Below, in pieces: positions 12,953 through 57,825 of a stretch of DNA of 64,000 nt. The notes beneath the pieces were generated by a model. The model ran no database searches. It was not told the origin of the DNA and saw only the letters and a list, made by a program, of their open reading frames with translations. Each line of letters opens with the position of its first letter. Positions within the stretch are counted from its first letter, which is position 1. The stretch lies in assembly GCA_026936335.1 (NCBI GenBank), contig JAPMXV010000069.1:248001-312000 (forward strand). The letters run 5' to 3'. The position numbers and the translations under genes were made by a program. Origin of the DNA: Mantamonas sphyraenae STR306. Lineage: Eukaryota > Protista > CRuMs.

Positions 12953-14343
12953 ATGGACACGGCACTGGGCAGCCAGCGGTCGCAGAGCCCTGTGCTGTAC
13001 AAGGGCCAAGAGCCGATGATGGGCGCGGTGCAGAGGGAGAAAACGTCGCAGGTGCAGCGGTGCATGAGGGTGAACAAGGCGGCGATTTTGGTCGTGTCGC
13101 TCGCGGTGTTTGTGTATGCAAACCTGTTCAACGGGACTTTGATTGTCGAAACGTCGCAGGCATTCGCCAGGCAAGAGGTGCAGCTTGGGCGGCAGGTGCT
13201 GATGGGGGTGCTGGGCAAGCACCAAACGATCGCACAAAAAACAATTGCCATTGCAAACTTAAAGGACTTTCGGACGGACATGGACAACGGCACGTTTCTC
13301 ACGTCGCTGATGCCGCTGTACGGAGGGGACCCACACTTTCTGGCACTGTACTGCGCCAATGAGCAGGGGGAGGTTATCAAGTTGCACTTTGAGAACAAGC
13401 CGTACGTGACGGTGGAACGGCGCTATCCATGGGGCCGCAAGATGAACTACTACGACTCGACGACGCTGCAGCTGGTGAGCACAGCACAAAACGTAAGGAG
13501 TGGGTGGGGCGGGCGGGCGGGGGCGGCACTGACACCGCGCAGACGAAAGGGTACGACGCGCGCGAAAAAGGGTGGTACAAGACGGCGTCGTCGCTGCTGA
13601 GCAAACAGACATTCACGTCGGGCCCGTTGCTGTCGCCGACAGACGCAAGCGCGTCGGTGCTGGTCGAGGTAGGGGCGGGAAAATCGCGGGTTTGTGCAGG
13701 AGGGCGCGGCGTGGACTGACACGGGGGCGCGGGGCAGATTGTGTTCAACATGCTCACGTCGTCGACAAGCAACCTGTTCTTCAAGATGAAGCTGGACGGG
13801 ACTCTGCTGCTGGACGCGATGAAGGAACTGAACGATTCGACCAACGCGATTCTGCTGTCGTCGGACGGGGGCTCGCCGCAGGTGCGCGTGAAAGCAAACT
13901 CGTTTGTTCGGAAGGACGGGGAGGCGCGGTTCGACGAGGGAAACTCGGGCGGGTTTGTGGTGGCAAACGCAACGGTGCCAGACTCGACGATGACGGTGCA
14001 GCTGAGGCGGGTGATCACAGACGTGTCGACAGAGGCAACGGTGAACCGGGTGGTGATCCTGCTGGCGTCGATGCTGGGGGGGCTGCTGTACGTGGTGCTG
14101 CTGGTGGTCAAGGTGCTGACGGCGCGGCATGAGAAGGAGATGACGATGGTGCTGCAGCAGTACGGGGTGGAGGGGAGTCTGAGGCAGGAGTCGCTGGAGT
14201 CGGGGGGAGGGAGTGTGGGGGGGGGGCCAAAGTTGGCGCAGCAGGGCGGGTGGGCGGTGGGGAGGGTGAGGTGGGGAGGGGTGAGGTGGGAGGCTGCCGC
14301 AGGGGGGGTGAGGAGGAGGGGAGGAGGAGGGGAGGAGGAATGA
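12953..14343 (+). CDS. Two-TM membrane protein with extracellular dCache-like sensor domain
   Basis: Introns 13493-13542 and 13669-13737 (both with ACTGAC branch) join three exons in frame; TM1 AAILVVSLAVFVYANLF, YDAREKGWYKTA (dCache YDPRxRxWY-like), TM2 VVILLASMLGGLLYVVLLVV. Confidence 0.7.
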
Positions 14344-14439
14344 AGGGTTTGTTGTGGGGGGTTTGGGAATGGGGGGGCGATGGGGAAGGGGGAAAACGGG
14401 GGGGGGGGAGGGGGTGTTGGGTTGGTGGGGGAAGTGCCA

Positions 14440-15170
14440 TTGCAGTTGTTTCTTGGTGCTGGGGAGGGTGTGCTGGGAGTGTGGGGCGACGGGGTGATCG
14501 GCCGGTTGGAGATCGGCAGGCGGATGAGTCGGGCGCCGGGCGAGGTCGCCATTGCAATTGTTTCGTGGTGGGTGGTGGGGTCGATGTGGGGTGTGGGTTG
14601 CTGGGGAGGGTGTGCTGGGAGTGTGGGGCGACGGGGTGGTCGGCCGGTTGGAGATCGGCGGGCGGATGAGTCGGGCGCCGGGCGAGGTTGCCATTGCAGT
14701 TGTTTCGTGGTGGGTGGTGGGGTCGATGTGGGTTGTGGGTTGGTACAGAGGGTGTGCTGGGAGTGTGGGGCGACGAGGTGGTCGGCCGGTTGGAGATCGG
14801 CGGGCGGATGAGTCGGGCGCCAGGCGAGGTCGCCATTGCAGTTGTTTCGTGGTGGGTGGTGGGGTCGATGTGGGGTGTGGGTTGGTACAGAGGGTGTGCG
14901 GGGGGTGTGGGGCGACGGGGTGGTCGGCCGGTTGGAGATCGGCGGGCGGATGAGTCGGGCGCCGGGCAAGGTCGCCATTGCAGTTGTTTCGTGGTGGGTG
15001 GTGGGGTCGATGTGGGGTGTGGGTTGGTACAGAGGGTGTGCTGGGAGTGTGGGGCGACGAGGTGGTCGGCCGGTTGGAGATCGGCGGGCGGATGAGTCGG
15101 GCGCCGGGCAAGGTCACCACTGCGGTTGTTTCGTGGTGGGTGGTGGGGTCGATGTCGGTTGTGGTGCAAT
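14440..15170. repeat. 142-bp tandem satellite, about 5 units
   Basis: Same unit as the 22.6-26.4 kb array. Confidence 0.9.
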
Positions 15171-15287
15171 GAGGATGGAGTCATTCCACCACCTCCCCCC
15201 CCCCCAACTTCCCGGGTCCACCTTCCGCATTCCGCACCCCCGCCCCCTCACACCCCATGACCCCTTACGCACCCCATATACAAAAAA

Positions 15288-15523
15288 AAAAAGGTTTGTG
15301 CTACTCATGGTTATGATGTGTCATCCTTGTGCAGGGACCATGCTGTGGGTTCAGTGCGTTTTGCGTTCCCGTGTGAGTTTCAGCGGCGAACACACTTCAC
15401 AGCACATCCTATCATCACATTCACATCCTATCCATCACATTCACATCCTATCTACGAACCTAATCTTCTCTGTTTTTAGATATAAGTTTCGATGTGATCT
15501 AATGACCCGAAGGACATTAGATC
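15288..15523 (-). ncRNA. U6: U6 snRNA gene interrupted by a 117-nt spliceosomal-type intron (15459-15343)
   Basis: Minus strand: 5' hairpin GATCTAATGTCC-TTCG-GGTCATTAGATC, then ACAGAGAAGATTAG | GTTCGT...GCACTGAACCCACAG | CATGGTCCCTGCACAAGGATGACAC, ending in an oligo-T tract. The joined exons reproduce the U6 core (ACAGAGA box, AGC triad, ISL). Confidence 0.9.
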
Positions 15524-16261
15524 GCTGCTTGTGTGTGTGAGTTCGAGCCAAACCCCGTCGCAAATGAACGCATCTTGACAACTTGCGACCGGCCCCGCCT
15601 CCGCGCCCCTGCCCTTCTCCTGTGCTCTCCACCACCCCCCACTCCCACTCCACACGCATGCAGTCTACCTGCCTCACGCCTCCCATTTCCCTCTCACCAC
15701 ACACACACACACACTCTCTCTCTCTGACACGCCCTTTCCTCCCTTTCTCCCCGGGCCTAGCCCGCCCACACACCCGTCCTTTCACTCTCCCGCTTTCACC
15801 AACAACATCCCTCACCCCGCACAACACTCCACCACTCCCACCCACTCCCCTCCCTCTCTCCTTCCCCCCCACCCCCCCCCCCCCCCCCACTTCACCTCCC
15901 CGCCAACCTTCCGTCTCCTCCCGGCCTTCTCCGCCCCCTTCTCACCCTCACCCACCACACACAACGCACCTCCCTTCCACACGTTTTCCTCACCCAGTAC
16001 CTACATTGTCTCTGTTTCCTCTCTTGCCACCGCCATCAGTTGTCTTGGCTCCTGGATCGCCGCAATCCGCCCCTTCGCCACTGCATGCACCCGCCGTCCA
16101 CCACTGCATCCACAACAGGTTCTCAGGCTCATTCTGCAGGTGATCTTTCATTTCCGGTCGCGCTTCTGCAATCACTCCTCCACACGCTGCCGCTTCTCCA
16201 CCCCACCCACCTCTCTCTCTCCTTCCTCCTCCTCCTCCACACGCTGCCGCTTCTCCACCCC
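15291..16261. repeat. About 970-bp direct repeat, copy 1 (U6, upstream region and KRQRV coding tail)
   Basis: Near-identical to 26491-27451 (offset about 11.2 kb). Confidence 0.9.
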
Positions 16262-19200
16262 ACCCACCTCTCTCTCTCCTTCCTCCTCCTCCTCCACACG
16301 CTGCCGCTTCTCCACCCCACCCACCTCTCTCTCTCCTTCCTCCTCCTCCTCCTCTCGCTCGCGCTTTTCCACCCCATCCATCTCTCCTTCCTCCTCGTTC
16401 ATCTGCTCCAACACGTGGTTGATCAAAAAGAACGGATGGACCAGCTCAAGCCTCCCGTAGATTCCGTCCGTGTATGCCTGGTTGCATTTGGTAGTCGCCG
16501 CATTGGCTACCGAGGTAGCCATGCGCATGCCCAAACTCTCCATGACCGCAGCGACTGCGAGCAGCAATGTGACTCCGTCGAGTTCCGCCGGCACCCTGCC
16601 ATAGTCGGAACTGAAACATAAACCCTCGCGCACGAGGTGTTCGCGAAGGTGCACAAGCCGCACCTGGGAGTCGCACTCGTACTGTTCAAGGGTGAACACC
16701 ACAGCCGCTTTCCTCACCTCCATGCTGGCCCCATTGAACGCAGCCACCGTCTCCTTCACCGCCTCGACCTCTCTGTTCACATACTCATCAGTCACAACGT
16801 CAAGGACATCTCGTGTCCCAGTGTATCCGTCGCAGTGCCGATTACGTTTGTTCTCGTTGACATAGTCCGTGTCCGGCGGTGAATCGATCTGCAGCGTCTC
16901 CCATCTCGCGCTCTCACGCACTCTTCCTTCCTCCTCATCCCTGCACGGTCGTGGTACATCTGTGTAGCCACACAAGGAGTAGTCAAGAAGCCACTTCTGC
17001 TGATCTGAGGTAAGCACGACCTCTTCGTCGCGTAAAACGCTTCTGAAAAGCAGACAGAGCTCCATGCCTGCTGCTGCAGCAGCCGTGAGAGCATCCGAGT
17101 CTTGGGCGACTATCCCCAGCTCTGTGGTGCCGCGGAGCGTTGCGATAAAGTCCACAATCTGCGTGTCTGCTTCGCTCGCGCGCTCACTTCCGATCGGGAA
17201 CAACACTGTTTTGCCAATGCGGTGAAGTGCAGCAACACACAGCCTGTACCGCACGCTTCTGTCGAGCCGCAGCAGGTCAACACAGCCAGTAGAAGTCTTC
17301 TGCATGATGTCCACAAAGCACGACCTGATCTTGTACCCGCCGCCACCGCACGCAGTCAGGACGCAGTCGGCGTTTGGGTACTTTTCAGTGAAGTGATAGA
17401 CGGTTCCGACCTGCGGGAACGCCAGCCGCCGCGCCAGCTTGACTTGCAATGTGTGCACGATGTCTTCCACGCTTCTTTGCCCGTTCACATGCGCCAGTGA
17501 CAGGAATGTCGCACAACCACAGTCAACAAGCCACATTGTCGGACGTACCTCCTGTGCCTTCGACTTGCTACTCATCTGGCGTGCAATATTCAGAAGCTTG
17601 GCCTTGTGATTGTGTCGCAGTTTTACCACTGCTTCGACCGTAGGCTGTTCGATCGCCGCCAACTGCAACTCGTCCACCTCGGCGTACGTCGTCGGCCGGT
17701 CGCCCAGGTTGTTCAGACGCTCCAGCAGGACAAATAGCAGATCGCTATGGCCCTGTGCGTCCTCTGTCAAGAACGCGACCTTCAGTCCAAGCTCAGTGAC
17801 ACCACAACGGAGTGTCCGTGAAATTGCGGCCCGGATCTGCGGAGTGAACGAGCTTGGCCTCAACAGCCGAACAAACAGGGCCAACTCGACGCCCGGCACG
17901 CCCACCTTTCCCAGGGCGCCCATGAGGCTGTACAGAAGCAATCGCAGCCCCCCGCTGTGCAGCACTTGCCTCAGTGCATTCTCTGCACTTGATGTCATTC
18001 CGCGCTCACGCTCTCCACACCTGTGGCGGATGTGATCCACCAGGGCCTCAAACTCCAGCGCCGTGCAGCAGTTGCGCTTGACGTTCGCACTCGAACCCCC
18101 TTCTCTGACCTTAGCCCATGCGCTCTTCCCAACATCGCAGTCGTACTCGACATCCTTCCACTCTCGCGTGTCCAACGCCAGGTGAACCAGAGCATAGTCT
18201 GCTTTTCTTTCCACGGCTGCACTCCACCAGCACACCTTCGTGTCCATTTTGACGCCGTACCGAAGCGCGGGGTGATGTGTGATGGTCTGGCTGACCTCGC
18301 TCTGCTCGCAGACACGCCCCAGTTGCGTGCACACCATCCAGACATCGTGCTGGCACATCAACCCGTTCCGGCTGAAAGCCAACACGATCTCGCCGACGAG
18401 TGTATGCAGGGAGCCGTGACACACCACCAGCATGGCTTTCAGTTTCAGCTCATTGTCCTTCAGCGACGAGTGTTCCTGTGCCAGTTCCTCCAGGTAACCC
18501 TGTGTGCACCCTTGGTCGTCGACATCATCTTCACCCCAGGCCCCTGCAGTCAGCCCTTGACTCCACCCGAACTCGATACCGTCTGGAGGGGTCTCGTTGG
18601 GGAACAATGGCTTGCGCACACGCCCTTTCGTCGTCTCCTTCGGATCCTGAAAGTCAACTGCGATGTCAAACTCACTCACGTCCTTGATGCTCCTGGGTCG
18701 TTCCCCGTACTTGTTCAGCTGATCAAGCAAGGTGTGTCGCAACATCGATAGCAAGTCCGTGTCCAGCTTAGTGATCTGCTTGAGTCTTGCCATCTTCAGC
18801 GAGAACAATGTCACTACCCCCGCAAAGACGTTATGGGCATTCAGGTTGTTTCGAACACTATCGGCTGTCACGCTTGGCATGAACAAGCGGACGAAGAAGG
18901 CCAAGTCAGTGGGTGGGACGCCCACATTGTCAAGCGCCGACAGGATATGCCGCATCAGGTCCACAAGCTTTCCGTTAGCCAGAACACACAGCTTGTGATG
19001 TGCGTTAGCAAGCTCTCCGTGGTCAGACGGCAGCGGGGATTCCTCCGTCAAAGCCCTGAGATATGCCAGCAGCATCTGGAACTCCCGCGCCGTGCAGCTG
19101 TCACGTTCGTCGCTGATGCCTTTGCTCCAGGTCCAGCTCTCGGCCCTGGGATCCCATGTCTCCATCTCGTTGATGGCGAGATGCCGGTCGTAGTCGCATT

Positions 19201-22200
19201 GTGTCCAGTGTGGGTCGCTGTCGTTGTCAGCAGGGCGTCGTGCTTCCTGCAGCCACAGCTGGGTCTGCTTGTGCTCCTCCCAGGTAGTGGGATGGCGTCT
19301 GTCGCCAAGAGTGTCCATCTCTGTCATGAGCAGATGGAGGAGGGCGTAGTTGGGCTCGCCGTAGTCGTGTGGCTCCTCCAGCCAGCACACCTTCAACCCA
19401 GCCCATGTCTCACCCACAGCCAGCCCAGCGTTGTTGACGGCTTTGCTGCACGCCTGCTGATCCATATCACGGCCGAGAAGAGTGAGACACAAGGCCATGT
19501 CGCCCTGGGAGAGGGGCCTGTTGCCCAGAACAAGCAGGATCTGTCGGACCAACGTGTTCAGGGTGCCATGGCAGACCACAACACGCGCCTGCAGGGTCAT
19601 ATCGTCGGCCATGTCGTCCCAGGGGTGCTCGAGTGCCAGAGTGTGCATGTGGTTCAGCAGTACCGTGTGCTCCCCCTTGCTGCTATGGCCACGGTGGTTT
19701 CCCTTCAACCATCCTTCGTGTAGAACGCCAATTGGCAGACTCGCTCCCAGCGCCACGCTCGTCTTCGGTTCCATCGTGGTACCACTGGGTTCGGGCAGAT
19801 CAAGGTCGGGGAAGAAAACGTTGGTCACCGTGTTCCTCGTGGTGGGGCGGGTGTCCATCTTGACGTGGCGTGTGATCCGATCGATGAGGATGTGGAGGAG
19901 GGTGTGCAGTTGTTTGACCTCGACACCTCGCTCGCCTTGGAACAGGACGATCCTGAGGTGCGTCACCGTACAGCGGATCGTGGAGCTTGCAGAGGCCGCG
20001 AACAAAACCTTCTCACAGTTGAGATCCGGCCGAACAGCGCGCACAAACAAGGCCAGGTCGACAGGCGGCACGCCAACGTTGCCCAGCGCCAGGAGGATGT
20101 GTCGTACAAGGGACATCGGATCGCCGTTGTAGATCAGCTCACGCAGTGCATGGTACTCGTGTACGTGCTGATCCCGAGGGTAATCTGCTGCGCGTGCCTC
20201 CATGTATCTCAGCAGCGTCTGGAACTCTCGCGCCGTGCAGCTGCCACGCGCCGTGCAGCTGCAGCGTGTTTCTTTGTCAATAGCTGTCCCGCACGCATGC
20301 ACAGGCGCAGGATCCCAGACTTCCAAATCCGTCGCATGTTGATCGTAGTCGCATTGTGTCCAGTGTGGGTCGCTGACGCTGTCGGCAGGGAGTCGTGCTT
20401 CCAGCTGCACCTGCATTTCCTCCAGCTCCTCCCATGTGGTGGGATGGGGCCTGTCGCCGAGAGTGTCCATCTCTGTCTTGAGCAGGTTGAGAAGAGCGCC
20501 GCTATCCTGCTCGTTCCATCTGCCTTTGCCTGCCTGTACGATGTCCTTCTCCATCTCCTTCTTGCACTGTGCCCATGACACCATTCGACCGAGTAGCGCC
20601 AGGCATACGCAGGCGTCGGCGACGGTCACTTCTTGCAGGACCCCTCGGATCATCGCAATGATCTCTTCAACAGAACCGTGGCACGCGATGGCACGAACTG
20701 TGAGGTCTTTCTCACCATTGTCTTGCTGTGGCTGTGTGAACCTCTCGATTACTGAAAGCTCAAACTTTGGCGGTTCGATGTCGAGGGTTGCGACGAGTGC
20801 GGAGGTGATGGGGCGGGTGCTGATATGAGGTGTGATGCGGTCGATGAGTGTGTGGAGGAGGGTGACCAGGAGGTCCGGTGTGGCCTCGCTGCGTTTGCTG
20901 CGTTTGCTGCGTTCCTTGTCAGTCATCTTGGGGTAGACAACCTTGAGGGAGAGAGAAGTGAGGCCGCGAGTGAGATTCGAACCAGTGGCGCTGATGGCAT
21001 TTTTCATCTGCGTGTAGGTGACGCGTGGCCTGAGGAGGCGGACAAAGAAAAACAGGTCGACAGGCGGCACGCCCACGTTGCCCATCGCCAGGATGATGTG
21101 CCGCAGCAGGGAGATCAGGCTGTCTTTTTCGATCATCTTACGCAGTGCATCGTCCGTGTGGGCGTGCTGATGGCGAGGGTGCTTGGCTGCGCGTGTCTTC
21201 ATGTGTGCCAGCAGCGTCTGGAACTCCTGCGCCGTGCAGCTGCCACGATCCCGTTTGCTCTCGCCTCTGCTAACAGGAGCCACAACGAGAGGATTCCACT
21301 TGTCAATCTTGGTGGTAGGAAGGTGGTGGTCGTACTCGCATTGTGTCCAGTGTGGGTCGCTGTCGTTGTCAGCAGGGCGTCGTGCTTCCTGCAGCCACTG
21401 CGGGGCCTGCTCGATCGTTTGACAGGTGATGAGACCAATAAGGTCGCCGATGGTATTCATCTCCTCTACGACCAGGTGGAGGAGGGCGTAGTTGGGGGCG
21501 TGGTTGTTGCTGTTGTCCCGTTTCTTCCACGTAAACGTCTCAACGCCATCCTTATTCTCTCTTTTCACGTTCCCGTCCAGCCTGATGGCGTTGAGAATGT
21601 TGTTCCCTTGGTCACATTTGCCGAGAAGGAGCAACAGGAGCAACAAATCGTCTCTGTACACGGCCAAGTCGCCGAGCGCGTACAGCAGGCTGTCCACGAC
21701 TCCACAGACACTTGGGGAAACGACCAACAGCCGAGCACACATACGGTCCTCCTCGGAAACCTCGTGGTTGTCAACCACCTCTTTGAGCCGCTCCTGCAGC
21801 TCTGTGTGGTGCTCAGCTGTCGCGTTCACGTGCCCACGCTTCTTTCCACGCGCGGCGGCTCCTCCACAGGTGTCTTTCCCTTCCTCCTGCATGCTCGTAT
21901 CATCACACACCATGTTGTCTGCCATGTCGTCCCCTTGCTCATCGAGTAACGCATGCACTGCCTTTGTGGACGAGTTCGCCTCAGCTGTGTCCTCCTTTGC
22001 ACCCTGATCCCACAACGCTATATGCATGTCTGTTGACTCCGTTTGCATGTACGGTGACGTCTGCCACCCCTGTGCTGTGCCTTCGCCGGCTTTTTCAGGC
22101 GAAGAGACAAACGAGTGATCACACACGCTGTTCTCTCCAGCACCCGCTCCAGCACACGCGTCAACCCGTTGCTTGCCTTTGCACGACGCGGACGACCCTG

Positions 22201-22576
22201 ATGGCTGTTGCGAGGCTGTAGACGAGACCCCGCGCGGCGAGTGCGCGGCCGCTGACGGATGTGCTTGCTGTGAGGCGGCAACGAATGATGTGATTGACAG
22301 TTGCTTTCGCTTGGGTGTTTTTTGCGCCGCTGCTCGACGCTTGGACGCCAGGGAGCGTGTCTCACCGCTTCCTGTGTGTGGTTTCGGCGTTTTGCCGTCG
22401 GCGTCTATGTCCATGGATGGGCGCCAGGTGCGATTTAGATGGGCTAGCCCTCGCAGGCGGTTCAAACCTCCAGCAAGAGGATCCAGTTCCCACTCTTGGC
22501 CTCCAAACGACCCGCACACACGCCCCTTACCCGTCGAACGAGGTGCAGAGTACAAAGCGCCGTGCAGGTCGTCCAT
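16172..22576 (-). CDS. 2134-aa protein with 3-4 large internal repeats, C-terminal XPG/FEN1-like (PIN) 5'-nuclease domain and NLS-like tail
   Basis: Uninterrupted ORF; repeats PHWTQC(D/E)YD...SCTA(R/Q)EFQ...LGNVGVPP; nuclease-like motifs MWLVD, SEADTQI, VAQDSDAL, LCGYTD; 19-aa tail repeats EEEEEGEREVGGVEKRQRV. Confidence 0.75.
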   Translation of the reverse strand: MDDLHGALYSAPRSTGKGRVCGSFGGQEWELDPLAGGLNRLRGLAHLNRTWRPSMDIDADGKTPKPHTGSGETRSLASKRRAAAQKTPKRKQLSITSFVAASQQAHPSAAAHSPRGVSSTASQQPSGSSASCKGKQRVDACAGAGAGENSVCDHSFVSSPEKAGEGTAQGWQTSPYMQTESTDMHIALWDQGAKEDTAEANSSTKAVHALLDEQGDDMADNMVCDDTSMQEEGKDTCGGAAARGKKRGHVNATAEHHTELQERLKEVVDNHEVSEEDRMCARLLVVSPSVCGVVDSLLYALGDLAVYRDDLLLLLLLLGKCDQGNNILNAIRLDGNVKRENKDGVETFTWKKRDNSNNHAPNYALLHLVVEEMNTIGDLIGLITCQTIEQAPQWLQEARRPADNDSDPHWTQCEYDHHLPTTKIDKWNPLVVAPVSRGESKRDRGSCTAQEFQTLLAHMKTRAAKHPRHQHAHTDDALRKMIEKDSLISLLRHIILAMGNVGVPPVDLFFFVRLLRPRVTYTQMKNAISATGSNLTRGLTSLSLKVVYPKMTDKERSKRSKRSEATPDLLVTLLHTLIDRITPHISTRPITSALVATLDIEPPKFELSVIERFTQPQQDNGEKDLTVRAIACHGSVEEIIAMIRGVLQEVTVADACVCLALLGRMVSWAQCKKEMEKDIVQAGKGRWNEQDSGALLNLLKTEMDTLGDRPHPTTWEELEEMQVQLEARLPADSVSDPHWTQCDYDQHATDLEVWDPAPVHACGTAIDKETRCSCTARGSCTAREFQTLLRYMEARAADYPRDQHVHEYHALRELIYNGDPMSLVRHILLALGNVGVPPVDLALFVRAVRPDLNCEKVLFAASASSTIRCTVTHLRIVLFQGERGVEVKQLHTLLHILIDRITRHVKMDTRPTTRNTVTNVFFPDLDLPEPSGTTMEPKTSVALGASLPIGVLHEGWLKGNHRGHSSKGEHTVLLNHMHTLALEHPWDDMADDMTLQARVVVCHGTLNTLVRQILLVLGNRPLSQGDMALCLTLLGRDMDQQACSKAVNNAGLAVGETWAGLKVCWLEEPHDYGEPNYALLHLLMTEMDTLGDRRHPTTWEEHKQTQLWLQEARRPADNDSDPHWTQCDYDRHLAINEMETWDPRAESWTWSKGISDERDSCTAREFQMLLAYLRALTEESPLPSDHGELANAHHKLCVLANGKLVDLMRHILSALDNVGVPPTDLAFFVRLFMPSVTADSVRNNLNAHNVFAGVVTLFSLKMARLKQITKLDTDLLSMLRHTLLDQLNKYGERPRSIKDVSEFDIAVDFQDPKETTKGRVRKPLFPNETPPDGIEFGWSQGLTAGAWGEDDVDDQGCTQGYLEELAQEHSSLKDNELKLKAMLVVCHGSLHTLVGEIVLAFSRNGLMCQHDVWMVCTQLGRVCEQSEVSQTITHHPALRYGVKMDTKVCWWSAAVERKADYALVHLALDTREWKDVEYDCDVGKSAWAKVREGGSSANVKRNCCTALEFEALVDHIRHRCGERERGMTSSAENALRQVLHSGGLRLLLYSLMGALGKVGVPGVELALFVRLLRPSSFTPQIRAAISRTLRCGVTELGLKVAFLTEDAQGHSDLLFVLLERLNNLGDRPTTYAEVDELQLAAIEQPTVEAVVKLRHNHKAKLLNIARQMSSKSKAQEVRPTMWLVDCGCATFLSLAHVNGQRSVEDIVHTLQVKLARRLAFPQVGTVYHFTEKYPNADCVLTACGGGGYKIRSCFVDIMQKTSTGCVDLLRLDRSVRYRLCVAALHRIGKTVLFPIGSERASEADTQIVDFIATLRGTTELGIVAQDSDALTAAAAAGMELCLLFRSVLRDEEVVLTSDQQKWLLDYSLCGYTDVPRPCRDEEEGRVRESARWETLQIDSPPDTDYVNENKRNRHCDGYTGTRDVLDVVTDEYVNREVEAVKETVAAFNGASMEVRKAAVVFTLEQYECDSQVRLVHLREHLVREGLCFSSDYGRVPAELDGVTLLLAVAAVMESLGMRMATSVANAATTKCNQAYTDGIYGRLELVHPFFLINHVLEQMNEEEGEMDGVEKREREEEEEEGEREVGGVEKRQRVEEEEEGEREVGGVEKRQRVEEEEEGEREVGGVEKRQRVEE

Positions 22577-25500
22577 GTCGGTTGTGGGTTGCTGGAGAGG
22601 GTGTGCGGGGGTGTGGGGCGATAGGAGATCGGCTGGGGAAGGAGTCGGGTGCGGCAGGGGGGGGGGGGATTACCATTGCGTTTGTTTCGTGGTGGGTGGT
22701 GGGGTCGATGTGGGGTGTGGGTTGGTACAGAGGGTGTGCTGGGAGTGTGGGGCGACGGGGTGGTCGGCCGGTTGGAGATCGGCGGGCGGATGAGTCGGGC
22801 GCCAGGCAAGGTCACCACTGCGTTTGTTTCGTGGTGGGTGGTGGGGTCGATGTGGGGTGTGGGTTGGTACAGAGGGTGTGCTGGGAGTGTGGGGCGACGA
22901 GGTGGTCGGCCGGTTGGAGATCGGGGGGGGGATGAGTCGGGCGCCGGGCGAGGTTGCCACTGCGTTTGTTTCGTGGTGGGTGGTGGGGTCGATGTGGGTT
23001 GTGGGTTGGTACAGAGGGTGTGCGGGGGGTGTGGGGCGACGGGGTGGTCGGCCGGTTGGAGATCGGCGGGCGGATGAGTCGGGCGCCGGGCGAGGTTGCC
23101 ACTGCGTTTGTTTCGTGGTGGGTGGTGGGGTCGATGTGGGTTGTGGGTTGCTGGGGAGGGTGTGCGGGGGGGTGTGGGGCGACGAGGTGGTCGGCCGGTT
23201 GGAGATCGGCAGGCGGATGAGTCGGGCGCCGGGCGAGGTTGCCACTGCGTTTGTTTCGTGGTGGGTGGTGGGGTCGATGTGGGTTGTGGGTTGGTACAGA
23301 GGGTGTGCTGGGAGTGTGGGGCGACGAGGTGGTCGGCCGGTTGGAGATCGGCAGGCGGATGAGTCGGGCGCCGGGCGAGGTCACCACTGCGTTTGTTTCG
23401 TGGTGGGTGGTGTGTTCCATGTCGGTTGTGGGTTGCTGGGGAGGGTGTGCGGGGGGGTGTGGGGCGACGAGGTGGTCGGCCGGTTGGAGATCGGCGGGCG
23501 GATGAGTCGGGCGCCGGGCAAGGTTGCCACTGCGTTTGTTTCGTGGTGGGTGGTGGGGTCGATGTGGGGTGTGGGTTGGTACAGAGGGTGTGCTGGGAGT
23601 GTGGGGCGACGGGGTGGTCGGCCGGTTGGAGATCGGCGGGCGGATGAGTCGGGCGCCAGGCGAGGTCGCCATTGCAGTTGTTTCGTGGTGGGTGGTGGGG
23701 TCGATGTGGGGTGTGGGTTGGTACAGAGGGTGTGCTGGGAGTGTGGGGCGACGAGGTGGTCGGCCGGTTGGAGATCGGCGGGCGGATGAGTCGGGCGCCA
23801 GGCGAGGTCGCCATTGCAGTTGTTTCGTGGTGGGTGGTGGGGTCGATGTGGGGTGTGGGTTGGTACAGAGGGTGTGCTGGGAGTGTGGGGCGACGAGGTG
23901 GTCGGCCGGTTGGAGATCGGCGGGCGGATGAGTCGGGCGCCGGGCAAGGTCGCCATTGCAGTTGTTTCGTGGTGGGTGGTGGGGTCGATGTGGGGTGTGG
24001 GTTGGTACAGAGGGTGTGCTGGGAGTGTGGGGCGACGGGGTGGTCGGCCGGTTGGAGATCGGCGGGCGGATGAGTCGGGCGCCAGGCGAGGTCGCCATTG
24101 CAGTTGTTTCGTGTTGGGTGGTGGGGTCGATGTGGGGTGTGGGTTGGTACAGAGGGTGTGCTGGGAGTGTGGGGCGACGAGGTGGTCGGCCGGTTGGAGA
24201 TCGGCAGGCGGATGAGTCGGGCGCCGGGCAAGGTTGCCACTGCGTTTGTTTCGTGGTGGGTGGTGTGGTCGATGTGGGGTGTGGGTTGGTACAGAGGGTG
24301 TGCTGGGAGTGTGGGGCGACGGGGTGGTCGGCCGGTTGGAGATCGGCAGGCGGATGAGTCGGGCGCCGGGCAAGGTTGCCACTGCGTTTGTTTCGTGGTG
24401 GGTGGTGGGGTCGATGTTGGGTGTGGGTTGGTACAGAGGGTGTGCTGGGAGTGTGGGGCGACGGGGTGGTCGGCCGGTTGGAGATCGGCGGGCGGATGAG
24501 TCGGGCGCCGGGCAAGGTCACCACTGCAGTTGTTTCGTGGTGGGTGGTGGGGTCGATGTGGGGTGTGGGTTGGTACAGAGGGTGTGCTGGGAGTGTGGGG
24601 CGACGGGGTGGTCGGCCGGTTGGAGATCGGCGGGCGGATGAGTCGGGCGCCAGGCGAGGTCGCCATTGCAGTTGTTTCGTGGTGGGTGGTGGGGTCGATG
24701 TGGGGTGTGGGTTGGTACAGAGGGTGTGCTGGGAGTGTGGGGCGACGAGGTGGTCGGCCGGTTGGAGATCGGCGGGCGGATGAGTCGGGCGCCAGGCGAG
24801 GTCGCCATTGCAGTTGTTTCGTGGTGGGTGGTGGGGTCGATGTGGGGTGTGGGTTGGTACAGAGGGTGTGCTGGGAGTGTGGGGCGACGAGGTGGTCGGC
24901 CGGTTGGAGATCGGCGGGCGGATGAGTCGGGCGCCGGGCAAGGTCGCCATTGCAGTTGTTTCGTGGTGGGTGGTGGGGTCGATGTGGGGTGTGGGTTGGT
25001 ACAGAGGGTGTGCTGGGAGTGTGGGGCGACGAGGTGGTCGGCCGGTTGGAGATCGGCAGGCGGATGAGTCGGGCGCCGGGCAAGGTTGCCACTGCGTTTG
25101 TTTCGTGGTGGGTGGTGTGGTCGATGTGGGGTGTGGGTTGGTACAGAGGGTGTGCTGGGAGTGTGGGGCGACGGGGTGGTCGGCCGGTTGGAGATCGGCA
25201 GGCGGATGAGTCGGGCGCCGGGCAAGGTTGCCACTGCGTTTGTTTCGTGGTGGGTGGTGGGGTCGATGTTGGGTGTGGGTTGGTACAGAGGGTGTGCTGG
25301 GAGTGTGGGGCGACGGGGTGGTCGGCCGGTTGGAGATCGGCGGGCGGATGAGTCGGGCGCCGGGCAAGGTCACCACTGCGTTTGTTTCGTGGTGGGTGGT
25401 GGGGTCGATGTGGGGTGTGGGTTGGTACAGAGGGTGTGCTGGGAGTGTGGGGCGACGAGGTGGTCGGCCGGTTGGAGATCGGCAGGCGGATGAGTCGGGC

Positions 25501-26415
25501 GCCGGGCGAGGTCGCCATTGCGTTTGTTTCGTGGTGGGTGGTGGGGTCGATGTTGGGTGTGGGTTGGTACAGAGGGTGTGCGGGGGGTGTGGGGCGACGG
25601 GGTGGTCGGCCGGTCGGAGATCGGCAGGCGGATGAGTCGGGCGCCGGGCAAGGTCGCCATTGCAGTTGTTTCGTGGTGGGTGGTGGGGTCGATGTGGGGT
25701 GTGGGTTGGTACAGAGGGTGTGCTGGGAGTGTGGGGCGACGGGGTGGTCGGCCGGTTGGAGATCGGCGGGCGGATGAGTCGGGCGCCAGGCGAGGTCGCC
25801 ATTGCAGTTGTTTCGTGTTGGGTGGTGGGGTCGATGTGGGGTGTGGGTTGGTACAGAGGGTGTGCTGGGAGTGTGGGGCGACGAGGTGGTCGGCCGGTTG
25901 GAGATCGGCAGGCGGATGAGTCGGGCGCCGGGCAAGGTTGCCACTGCGTTTGTTTCGTGGTGGGTGGTGTGGTCGATGTGGGGTGTGGGTTGGTACAGAG
26001 GGTGTGCTGGGAGTGTGGGGCGACGGGGTGGTCGGCCGGTTGGAGATCGGCAGGCGGATGAGTCGGGCGCCGGGCAAGGTTGCCACTGCGTTTGTTTCGT
26101 GGTGGGTGGTGGGGTCGATGTTGGGTGTGGGTTGGTACAGAGGGTGTGCTGGGAGTGTGGGGCGACGGGGTGGTCGGCCGGTTGGAGATCGGCGGGCGGA
26201 TGAGTCGGGCGCCGGGCAAGGTCACCACTGCGTTTGTTTCGTGGTGGGTGGTGGGGTCGATGTGGGGTGTGGGTTGGTACAGAGGGTGTGCTGGGAGTGT
26301 GGGGCGACGGGGTGGTCGGCCGGTTGGAGATCGGCAGGCGGATGAGTCCGGCGCCGGGCAAGGTCGCCACTGCGATTGTTTCGTCGCGTGAGGTGGTGGG
26401 GTCGATGTCGGTTGT
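22575..26415. repeat. 142-bp tandem satellite, about 27 units, with 852-bp (6-mer) higher-order periodicity
   Basis: GTTGGTACAG recurs every 142 bp; diagnostic variants recur at about 24265/25117/25969 and 24411/25263/26115. Confidence 0.92.
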
Positions 26416-26486
26416 GGGGTAATCAGGATGGTGTCAATGCACACCTTTCGCACCCCCTACCTACCCGTTGCTGTTGCACCAACTTT

Positions 26487-26719
26487 AAAAAAGGTTTGTG
26501 CTACTCATGGTTATGATGTGTCATCCTTGTGCAGGGACCATGCTGTGGGTTCAGTGCGTTTTGCGTTCCCGTGTGAGTTTCAGCGGCGAACACACTTCAC
26601 AGCACATCCTATCATCACATTCACATCCTATCCATCACATTCACATCCTATCTACGAACCTAATCTTCTCGTTTTGATTAAGTTTCGATGTGATCTAATG
26701 ACCCGAAGGACATTAGATC
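26487..26719 (-). ncRNA. U6: Second intron-containing U6 snRNA copy (intron 26659-26543); ACAGAGA box reads ACGAGA
   Basis: Matches copy 1 except for small indels just 5' of and within the ACAGAGA box; may be a pseudogene or a sequencing error. Confidence 0.75.
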
Positions 26720-27451
26720 GCTGCTTGTGTGTGTGAGTTCGGGCCAATCCGGATCGGAAATGCGCATCTCGACAACTTGCGAACCGGCCCCGCCTCCGCG
26801 CCCTGCCCTTCTCCTGTGCTCTCCACCACCCCCCACTCCCACTCCACACGCATGCAGTCTACCTGCCTCACGCCTCCCATTTCCCTCTCACCACACACAC
26901 ACACACACTCTCTCTCTCTGACACGCCCTTTCCTCCCTTTCTCCCCGGGCCTAGCCCGCCCACACACCCGTCCTTTCACTCTCCCGCTTTCACCAACAAC
27001 ATCCCTCACCCCGCACAACACTCCACCACTCCCACCCACTCCCCTCCCTCTCTCCTTCCCCACCCCCCCCCCCCCCACTTCACCTCCCCGCCAACCTTCC
27101 GTCTCCTCCCGGCCTTCTCCGCCCCCTTCTCACCCTCACCCACCACACACAACGCACCTCCCTTCCACACGTTTTCCTCACCCAGTACCTACATTGTCTC
27201 TGTTTCCTCTCTTGCCACCGCCATCAGTTGTCTTGGCTCCTGGATCGCCGCAATCCGCCCCTTCGCCACTGCATGCACCCGCCGTCCACCACTGCATCCA
27301 CAACAGGTTCTCAGGTCCTCATTCTGCAGGTGATCTTTCATTTCCGGTCGCGCTTCTGCAATCACTCCTCCACACGCTGCCGCTTCTCCACCCCACCCAC
27401 CTCTCTCTCTCCTTCCTCCTCCTCCTCCACACGCTGCCGCTTCTCCACCCC
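26491..27451. repeat. About 960-bp direct repeat, copy 2
   Basis: Matches 15291-16261. Confidence 0.9.
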
Positions 27452-56406: not shown

Positions 56407-57825
56407 TCATCCTGCTCTTCTTCTTCTTGCGCGTGTGCGGGTGCTGGTGCTGGCGGTTTCAGTTGGGGTACTTGGGGTGCTGGTGCTGGCGGGTTCACTG
56501 GGGGTGCTGGCTCTCTTGTAAGCTTCCAGCACCTGCTTGCCTGCATTGGAGACGGTGATGTGATCAAATCGTTCTCCATGCTGGTTGTTGGTCAAGCCTG
56601 GTGGATTGCTGACGTTCTGAAATCTGCGCCCAATGGACTTGCGAGAGTGCGTGGCCATGTGCAAGAAGAGGCCAATGGGCAGCCCAGCTTGCTGTTCAAT
56701 TGCCTCCACCTCCTTGCGGGTGGTACGCAGGTAATTCCCGAATTTCTTGCCCTCGTGGAAGCTGAAGAACGTTTCCACCGCGAAAGTGTGGACGCGCAAG
56801 TTTGTGTTTTCGGTGATTGCGGCCTTGACGTTGTCGGTGAGGTTGACATGCAGCTTACGGCGAATCGTGCACAGGACGCGGTCCAGGTTGATCTTTTTGG
56901 AGAGTGCATTCCACGTGGAATTCCAGTTTGCCAACGCGTTGGATGTCGTCTGGTCACGCGTGAACGGAACCGCACCTTTGACGAGCGAGGCCAAATCAAA
57001 GAGGGGCTGCAGAGGTGGGGCATGGGGACCGGGTGTTTCAGACACAAGGACCCATCTGTTGTTGACGGTACGATGGAGCCACAGCCCCTGGGATGGTTCG
57101 GTGCAGACGAGCTGGAACGCATTGTCTGCAGCGAGGAGGGTGCTTGCGTTTGGTGGCTCCAAGGTACCATTCAGGCCAAGCAGGAGCACATCTACGGCTG
57201 CTTGGTAGTCAAAGTGCTTGCTGGCAGCTTTTGTGGCGGTGGTGAGCTTGGCATTTGGCCTCTTGTCAAAGGTGAGGATCCTGAGGTTGAAGTCATCCTC
57301 GCTGGACGTGGTGTTGTTGTACGCGTCACTGATGTGACGATCTACACGACTCGTGCGTGTGCCACTTGAGCTTGAGGAGCCGGAAGAGCTTGAGGACCTG
57401 ACCGACCTGGAGTCGTCGAGAGAGGGGGAACTGGAAACATCGATGCTTTGGTCCTGACCGTCGTCTGCGTCGTCGCTTTCCGCGTCGTCGCTTTCCACGT
57501 CGTCTTCGTCCTCGTTGTTGCTTTTTTCGGGCGACTCCACGTCGTCTTCCTCGGTTTCTTCGGGGCTTTCTTCGGGCAATTCCGATTCAATGGACATCGT
57601 TGGGGGGTTTGAAGCCGTCGGCTCATGGTCGGCTGGCCCACGGCTGTGTGATTCGTCCGCGAGCACGCGTTGGCGGGCGGCATCGGGTTGATCGTGATCA
57701 GCGATCTCGGACCCGTCCTCAAGCGCATTCCGGGAGCGCTTTCGATGCGTCGAGGAGGGGGGAGTGGAGGGGAGTGACTCATTGGATGAGTCTCGGTTGT
57801 CTTGAGAAGAGGGAGTGTTGTCCAT
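56407..57825 (-). CDS. Hypothetical protein (472 aa) with acidic/Ser-rich disordered N-terminus and NLS-like RKRSR
   Basis: ATG-initiated long ORF. Confidence 0.6.
   Translation of the reverse strand: MDNTPSSQDNRDSSNESLPSTPPSSTHRKRSRNALEDGSEIADHDQPDAARQRVLADESHSRGPADHEPTASNPPTMSIESELPEESPEETEEDDVESPEKSNNEDEDDVESDDAESDDADDGQDQSIDVSSSPSLDDSRSVRSSSSSGSSSSSGTRTSRVDRHISDAYNNTTSSEDDFNLRILTFDKRPNAKLTTATKAASKHFDYQAAVDVLLLGLNGTLEPPNASTLLAADNAFQLVCTEPSQGLWLHRTVNNRWVLVSETPGPHAPPLQPLFDLASLVKGAVPFTRDQTTSNALANWNSTWNALSKKINLDRVLCTIRRKLHVNLTDNVKAAITENTNLRVHTFAVETFFSFHEGKKFGNYLRTTRKEVEAIEQQAGLPIGLFLHMATHSRKSIGRRFQNVSNPPGLTNNQHGERFDHITVSNAGKQVLEAYKRASTPSEPASTSTPSTPTETASTSTRTRARRRRAG

Follow-up and report, generated by a model that had tools for sequence, protein, structure and literature searches.

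Introns in U6 snRNA genes were an early clue to the placement of U6 at the spliceosome's active site, and the one in Schizosaccharomyces carries a Pol III B box. S. pombe, Rhodotorula, Rhodosporidium and numerous further fungi have them, with reverse splicing as the proposed origin, and most of the cases, according to the 2018 review, are without experimental proof of splicing (PMC5855946). In S. pombe the sole U6 gene, snu6, is interrupted at the AGC triad by an intron of mRNA type (Tani and Ohshima 1989, via PMC5855946). The intron is 'immediately adjacent' to the triad by the review's description, and its splicing by the spliceosome is proven (PMC5855946). Other fungal U6 introns (Rhodotorula hasegawae, Rhodosporidium dacryoidum and the survey of Canzler et al. 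2016, via PMC5855946) have canonical splice signals and unrelated sequences, and their insertion sites concentrate, by the same survey, near the ACAGA box and the ISL/AGC. The hosts described in the review and in the literature searched are all fungi, and no non-fungal U6 intron was found in that literature.

The DNA analysed here, a window of 64,000 nucleotides from the genome of the CRuMs protist Mantamonas sphyraenae, contains on its minus strand a U6 snRNA gene of two exons (64 nt and 50 nt), separated by a GT...AG insert of 117 nt and followed by a T11 terminator. This U6 gene, whose AGC triad is split by an mRNA-type intron, is real and well supported, and it is the first U6-intron case outside fungi in the literature searched. 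As in S. pombe, the sole canonical U6 gene is split at the AGC triad by an intron of mRNA type, so that the spliceosome has to process its own catalytic RNA in S. pombe and would have to do so in Mantamonas; for both introns an origin by reverse splicing is favoured (for the fungal ones see PMC5855946), and the insertion site agrees with the regions where the fungal sites concentrate. The two cases differ in the host, which is a CRuMs protist and not a fungus, in the intron, which in Mantamonas is 117 nt long and unrelated in sequence, in its exact place, which in Mantamonas is between the G and the C of the triad, in the promoter, which in Mantamonas would be an upstream PSE common to U1 and U4, and in the splicing, which is predicted for Mantamonas. 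The mitochondrial HSP70 of the host stands at 74% to that of Mantamonas plastica (EukProt) and at 65% or less to all others; the host is thus not a fungus, and the case is therefore independent of the fungal ones, as the initial annotation had held. The features of this gene (copy 1), in window coordinates, are the following.

15575 to 15590, minus strand: PSE-like snRNA promoter motif GGTCGCAAGTTGTCAA (motif GGTCGCRAGTYGTCRA), -67 to -52 relative to the start of U6, common to U4 and U1
15460 to 15523, minus strand: U6 exon 1, 64 nt, with the 5' stem-loop and its UUCG tetraloop, linker, ACAGAGA box and 3' end ...GAUUAG (sequence, fold and alignment)
15523 to 15496, minus strand: 5' hairpin of 28 nt with a C(UUCG)G loop: a stem of 9 bp, then a U-U mismatch, another 2 bp and the UUCG loop (fold)
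15473 to 15460, minus strand: 14-mer ACAGAGAAGATTAG, the 3' end of exon 1 (sequence)
15343 to 15459, minus strand: U6 intron, 117 nt, starting with GTTCGT and ending with CTGAACCCACAG (...CACAG) (sequence)
15293 to 15342, minus strand: U6 exon 2, 50 nt, with the C of the AGC triad, the internal stem-loop region and the 3' tail (RF00026 match and alignment)
15282 to 15292, minus strand: T11 run, Pol III-type terminator (sequence)

The minus-strand elements named by the initial annotation, namely the hairpin, the 14-mer, the 117-nt insert, exon 2 and the oligo-T, are all present at these coordinates. Exon 1 terminates, after the linker, in ACAGAGAAGAUUAG at 15460, and exon 2 opens with CATGGTCCCTGCACAAGGATGACAC / CAUGGUCCCUGCACAAGGAUGACAC from 15342, with GT and AG flush with both borders of the insert. 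Removal of the insert restores, as had been claimed, the canonical U6 reading AUUAG|CAUGG, and the insert therefore separates the G from the C of the AGC triad; after joining, the ACAGAGA box and then the triad follow at the canonical spacing (ACAGAGAAGAUUAG|CAUGG). Searches and alignments used each exon by itself, the joined sequence being built from the window for the folds only. The Rfam U6 model (RF00026) matches exon 2 alone with 35.8 bits (E 1.7e-7), so that the genomic locus stays below the gathering threshold of 44 bits, and the Rfam search of the whole window returned no gathering-level match. The internal stem-loop CCCUGCxCAAGGAUGACAC is present and aligns with other U6 genes, its exact matches genome-wide being only at the two U6 copies of the window. 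The 14-mer ACAGAGAAGATTAG is unique in the 25-Mb genome and sits on the strand of exon 2, 117 nt upstream of it. Taken together, the U6 match, the unique 14-mer and the flush GT and AG exceed chance expectation.

Inside the intron there is a tandem duplication of about 21 nt, and no T run in it exceeds 2. Its genome-wide matches are two, both in U6 genes; thus, an origin from an introner, repeat or transposon-derived family was rejected, the intron being confined to the two U6 copies. For comparison of the splice signals, nine mRNA introns of the same genome were defined by paralogue comparison (HSP70, actin, Arp and tubulin genes). In this small sample (n=9) the 5' sites include GTAAGT (three), GTGAGT, GTATGT, GTAGGT, GTACGT and GTGGTC, and the branches are mostly CTGAC, 17-58 nt from the CAG 3' end. 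The U6 and the mRNA introns have in common the GT, the G at +5, the T at +6 and the CAG end. The likeness of its 3' end to mRNA introns, put forward in the initial annotation, is borne out. The 5' splice site GUUCGU (GTTCGT in the DNA) is atypical, with U at +3 followed by C at +4, whereas all nine of the homology-defined introns have A or G at +3. An exact CTGAC branch motif is absent from the 117-nt intron, and the near-consensus branch candidates are CTCAC (-31), CTGAA (-37) and CACTGAAC (-9), so the splice signals appear plausible but weak; a census of splice-motif k-mers within the window gave no enrichment. The motif near 13526 that had been likened to the U6 intron end does exist, on the plus strand, in an intron predicted from sequence only: this is a putative intron of 68 nt at 13474-13542 (+), reading GTGAGC...CACTGAC and then 10 nt to the CAG, and it suggests that very short distances from branch to 3' splice site may occur in this genome. 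An intron-borne Pol III B box was not adopted for Mantamonas, as GGTTCGTAGAT at the intron start fits only the first 6 consensus positions and an upstream PSE exists. The pairing of the ACG of copy 2 with positions +4 to +6 of GUUCGU was treated as chance, being a 3-nt match in a shifted register only.

The second U6 copy lies about 11 kb off, at 26719-26493 on the minus strand, with its intron and exon 2 identical to those of copy 1.

26769 to 26784, minus strand: variant PSE GTTCGCAAGTTGTCGA of copy 2, with one additional T (sequence)
26660 to 26719, minus strand: exon 1 of copy 2, 60 nt, with AACGAGA in place of ACAGAGA (sequence)
26543 to 26659, minus strand: intron of copy 2, identical to that of copy 1 at 117 of 117 positions (sequence)
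26487 to 26542, minus strand: exon 2 of copy 2, the same as in copy 1, with a T6 run (sequence)

Given the AACGAGA box, copy 2 is probably a pseudogene or a variant, and it is proposed to have arisen by a recent duplication, its ACAGAGA box being damaged. Arrays of a 142-bp tandem satellite (14322-15200 and 22588-26450) lie directly downstream of both U6 copies, and the two satellite-plus-U6 units form direct repeats flanking an ORF of 2134 aa (16172-22576). The U6 units themselves (15200-15900 and 26400-27100, minus strand) show no difference in more than 380 nt of upstream sequence, in the full intron or in exon 2, but differ in two tight patches (one close to the promoter, at -55 to -20, and one in the ACAGAGA region) and from the terminator onward; judged by this comparison, the differences are too patchy for plain pseudogene decay.

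A search of the 25.06-Mb assembly for an intronless U6, by Rfam and by pattern, found none. The Rfam search of the whole assembly placed U6 at two places, both in the window, and the searches for U6-core patterns with up to 3 mismatches returned the same two places, ACAGAGAAGATTAG occurring in copy 1 only; copy 1 is thus the sole canonical U6 gene of the assembly, and the genome check that the initial annotation had called for left two intron-bearing copies only. A weak third U6 match (L003) was rejected as coding sequence, other PSE-bearing loci were rejected as hidden U6 genes, having neither an Rfam match nor U6 likeness, and a U6atac-like RNA was rejected as an intronless U6, being a distinct RNA. 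The assembly is long-read and consists of primary contigs only, with 59 of its 78 contigs running telomere to telomere and 19 of 78 without a telomere at one end at least (PMC10492846); with primary contigs only and these missing telomeres, an unassembled intronless copy stays conceivable. The published genome paper leaves snRNAs and introns unmentioned (PMC10492846).

The motif GGTCGCRAGTYGTCRA stands 52-71 nt upstream of U6, of both U4 copies and of U1, the matching sites before the two U4 copies and U1 being C34:139540-139555, C34:147184-147199 and C60:306254-306269. Exact matches of the PSE class number 5 genome-wide, as against a chance expectation of about 0.1 by our own estimate (8 variants of a 16-mer, 50 Mb on both strands), and four of the five precede Rfam-detected snRNA genes; PSE variants also occur upstream of the U6atac-like gene and of U6 copy 2. 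The shared motif is accordingly a candidate PSE of Mantamonas, and it gives a practical handle for snRNA annotation in this organism. The partner RNAs were found in the same genome as well. U4 was detected by Rfam with 52.3 bits, and in the cofold with the joined U6 it forms the canonical stem II and an 8-bp stem I spanning the exon junction, in agreement with the U4 complementarity that the initial annotation had expected of the joined sequence; with the intron retained, stem I is lost. U2 (107 bits) carries GGCUUAGAUC, the GCU...GAUC partner for helix I.

The RNA data examined were one public run of an outdoor metatranscriptome. One contig of 168 nt in this run spans 15321-15482 in the unspliced form and lies wholly inside the predicted transcript, differing from the window by one substitution and two indels, both of the indels within the intron. 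The insert is therefore confirmed independently of the assembly, and the contig suggests that the U6 precursor is transcribed. The 15460/15342 junction was not seen in this one run, of which the assembled contigs cannot show absence; small RNAs are usually missing from such metatranscriptome libraries. The splicing itself is inferred.

It is very probable, in our assessment, that copy 1 is a functional U6 gene, with a PSE-driven precursor, removal of the predicted spliceosomal intron, entry into U4/U6 and an intron that arose by reverse splicing. Transcription would run from the upstream PSE-type snRNA promoter to the T11 run and would give a precursor of about 235 nt; the polymerase is probably Pol III, which would not stop inside the intron, since the T runs there do not exceed 2. 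Existing spliceosomes would then excise the 117-nt mRNA-type intron to leave a mature U6 of about 118 nt, and this spliced RNA only would form the U4/U6 stem I, the U2/U6 helix Ib and the catalytic triad, and would join the U4/U6 complex. The intron most likely originated as in the model published for the fungi, whereby an excised intron would have been reverse-spliced into U6 in the active centre, and the intron-bearing U6 would then have been reverse-transcribed and recombined into the gene.

A quite different reading, that both copies are dead, unspliced pseudogenes while a working intronless U6 lies outside the primary assembly, we consider improbable. The damaged ACAGAGA box of copy 2, the weak splice signals, the RNA seen in the unspliced form only and the restriction of the assembly to primary contigs would all agree with it; however, copy 1 retains all the invariant U6 elements with its PSE and T11 terminator, the exhaustive pattern searches returned no further U6 core, the telomere-to-telomere contigs are 59 of 78, and an environmental relative has the same intron with intact exons. 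The probability is lower again that the insert is real and yet not removed by the spliceosome, some other excision route being used or the RNA working with the insert or as two pieces. Such a course would accommodate the atypical 5' splice site and branch, the splicing being a prediction, but GT and AG stand exactly at the borders whose joining restores a canonical U6, a contiguous strand is required by the AGC triad, by stem I of U4/U6 and by helix Ib of U2/U6, other lineages have GT-AG introns at the same site with good branch sites, and the spliceosome does splice the U6 of S. pombe (PMC5855946). An artefact of assembly or polishing, with the insert absent from the true genome, is hardly credible: although the assembly is based on long reads, the identical 117 nt occur in two copies, and the separate public metatranscriptome contig has the insert with small differences, by which this explanation is effectively refuted.

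In accordance with copy 1 being a functional, intron-split U6 gene, similar genes occur elsewhere. A scan of metagenomes for the exon 1 end followed by GT returned 118 stretches, and at least 22 metagenome loci among those examined are U6 genes split at exactly AUUAG|CAUGG. These include the following.

L069 4059 to 4233 and L028 10277 to 10454: Bathycoccus prasinos types, introns of 60-63 nt, with neighbour proteins clustering with B. prasinos
L055 10631 to 10892: marine protist (L055/L123), introns of 137-138 nt, with the relatives of the neighbouring gene all unnamed
L084 967 to 1227: GC-rich marine eukaryote, intron of 137 nt
L056 660 to 815: fungal contig with Sen2 as the neighbour, intron of 52 nt, branch TACTAAC

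The view in the initial annotation that intron-containing U6 genes are rare and mainly fungal holds for the cases in the literature, but has to be qualified by the environmental sequences, where Bathycoccus, other marine protists and a fungus have U6 genes interrupted at this very site. The same-site genes of the Bathycoccus types reach 56-61 bits with RF00026, the match extending across the intron, and between two of the types the intron is 62% identical and the exons about 96% (own count, aligned exons). The metagenome genes are like that of Mantamonas in the AUUAG|CAUGG insertion point, the GT-AG borders, the conserved exons and the lack of any T run of 4 or more; unlike it, they have introns of 52-138 nt, in which no similarity in sequence to that of Mantamonas is seen, and the same-site introns are unrelated in sequence. 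Their 5' sites are GTA or GTG, several have clear CTAAC or CTGAC branches, and they are known from the genes alone.

It may tentatively be suggested, as a possibility rather than as our expectation, that introns recur in different eukaryotic supergroups at the G|C of the AGC triad of U6 (in CRuMs, green algae and fungi, as well as in at least one marine protist), this site being either a hot spot for reverse splicing into the catalytic centre or the place of a very old intron mostly lost, and that in Mantamonas the sole canonical U6, needing intron removal through weak signals, could couple the U6 supply to spliceosome activity. Autoregulation through the U6 intron, which the initial annotation had also put forward, is pure conjecture with no result in its support; with a single U6 gene, low spliceosome activity would reduce the U6 supply still more, and such a feedback would therefore not be homeostatic.

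With a deep-branching CRuMs case for which no intronless back-up was found, the phenomenon extends beyond fungi, and the splitting of the same phosphodiester bond in Bathycoccus and other marine eukaryotes makes the reverse-splicing idea open to comparative testing, the question for such comparison being whether active-site geometry, a preference for proto-splice sites or ancestry determines where the introns insert. The intron-split U6 genes that covariance-model scans miss are also a warning for annotation.

Several minor observations concern the other small RNAs of the genome. The search for U5 with RF00020 gave no match. The U2 genes form an identical inverted pair (C43:49603-49805 on the minus and 56479-56681 on the plus strand), as do the U4 genes (C34:139342-139484 on the minus and 147255-147397 on the plus strand), the members of each pair being about 7-8 kb apart. 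At the locus L149 (C70:278400-279900) four units of about 190-200 nt stand in tandem. Every unit has the PSE motif and a conserved body and closes with a T-run terminator; having no Rfam match, the units appear as a small-RNA gene family outside Rfam. The U6atac-like RNA is uninterrupted (L012 1501-1601, that is C58:259739-259839, minus strand), scores 29.7 bits and has the AAGGAGAGA box, an AGC and a T run, which hints at a minor spliceosome in Mantamonas.
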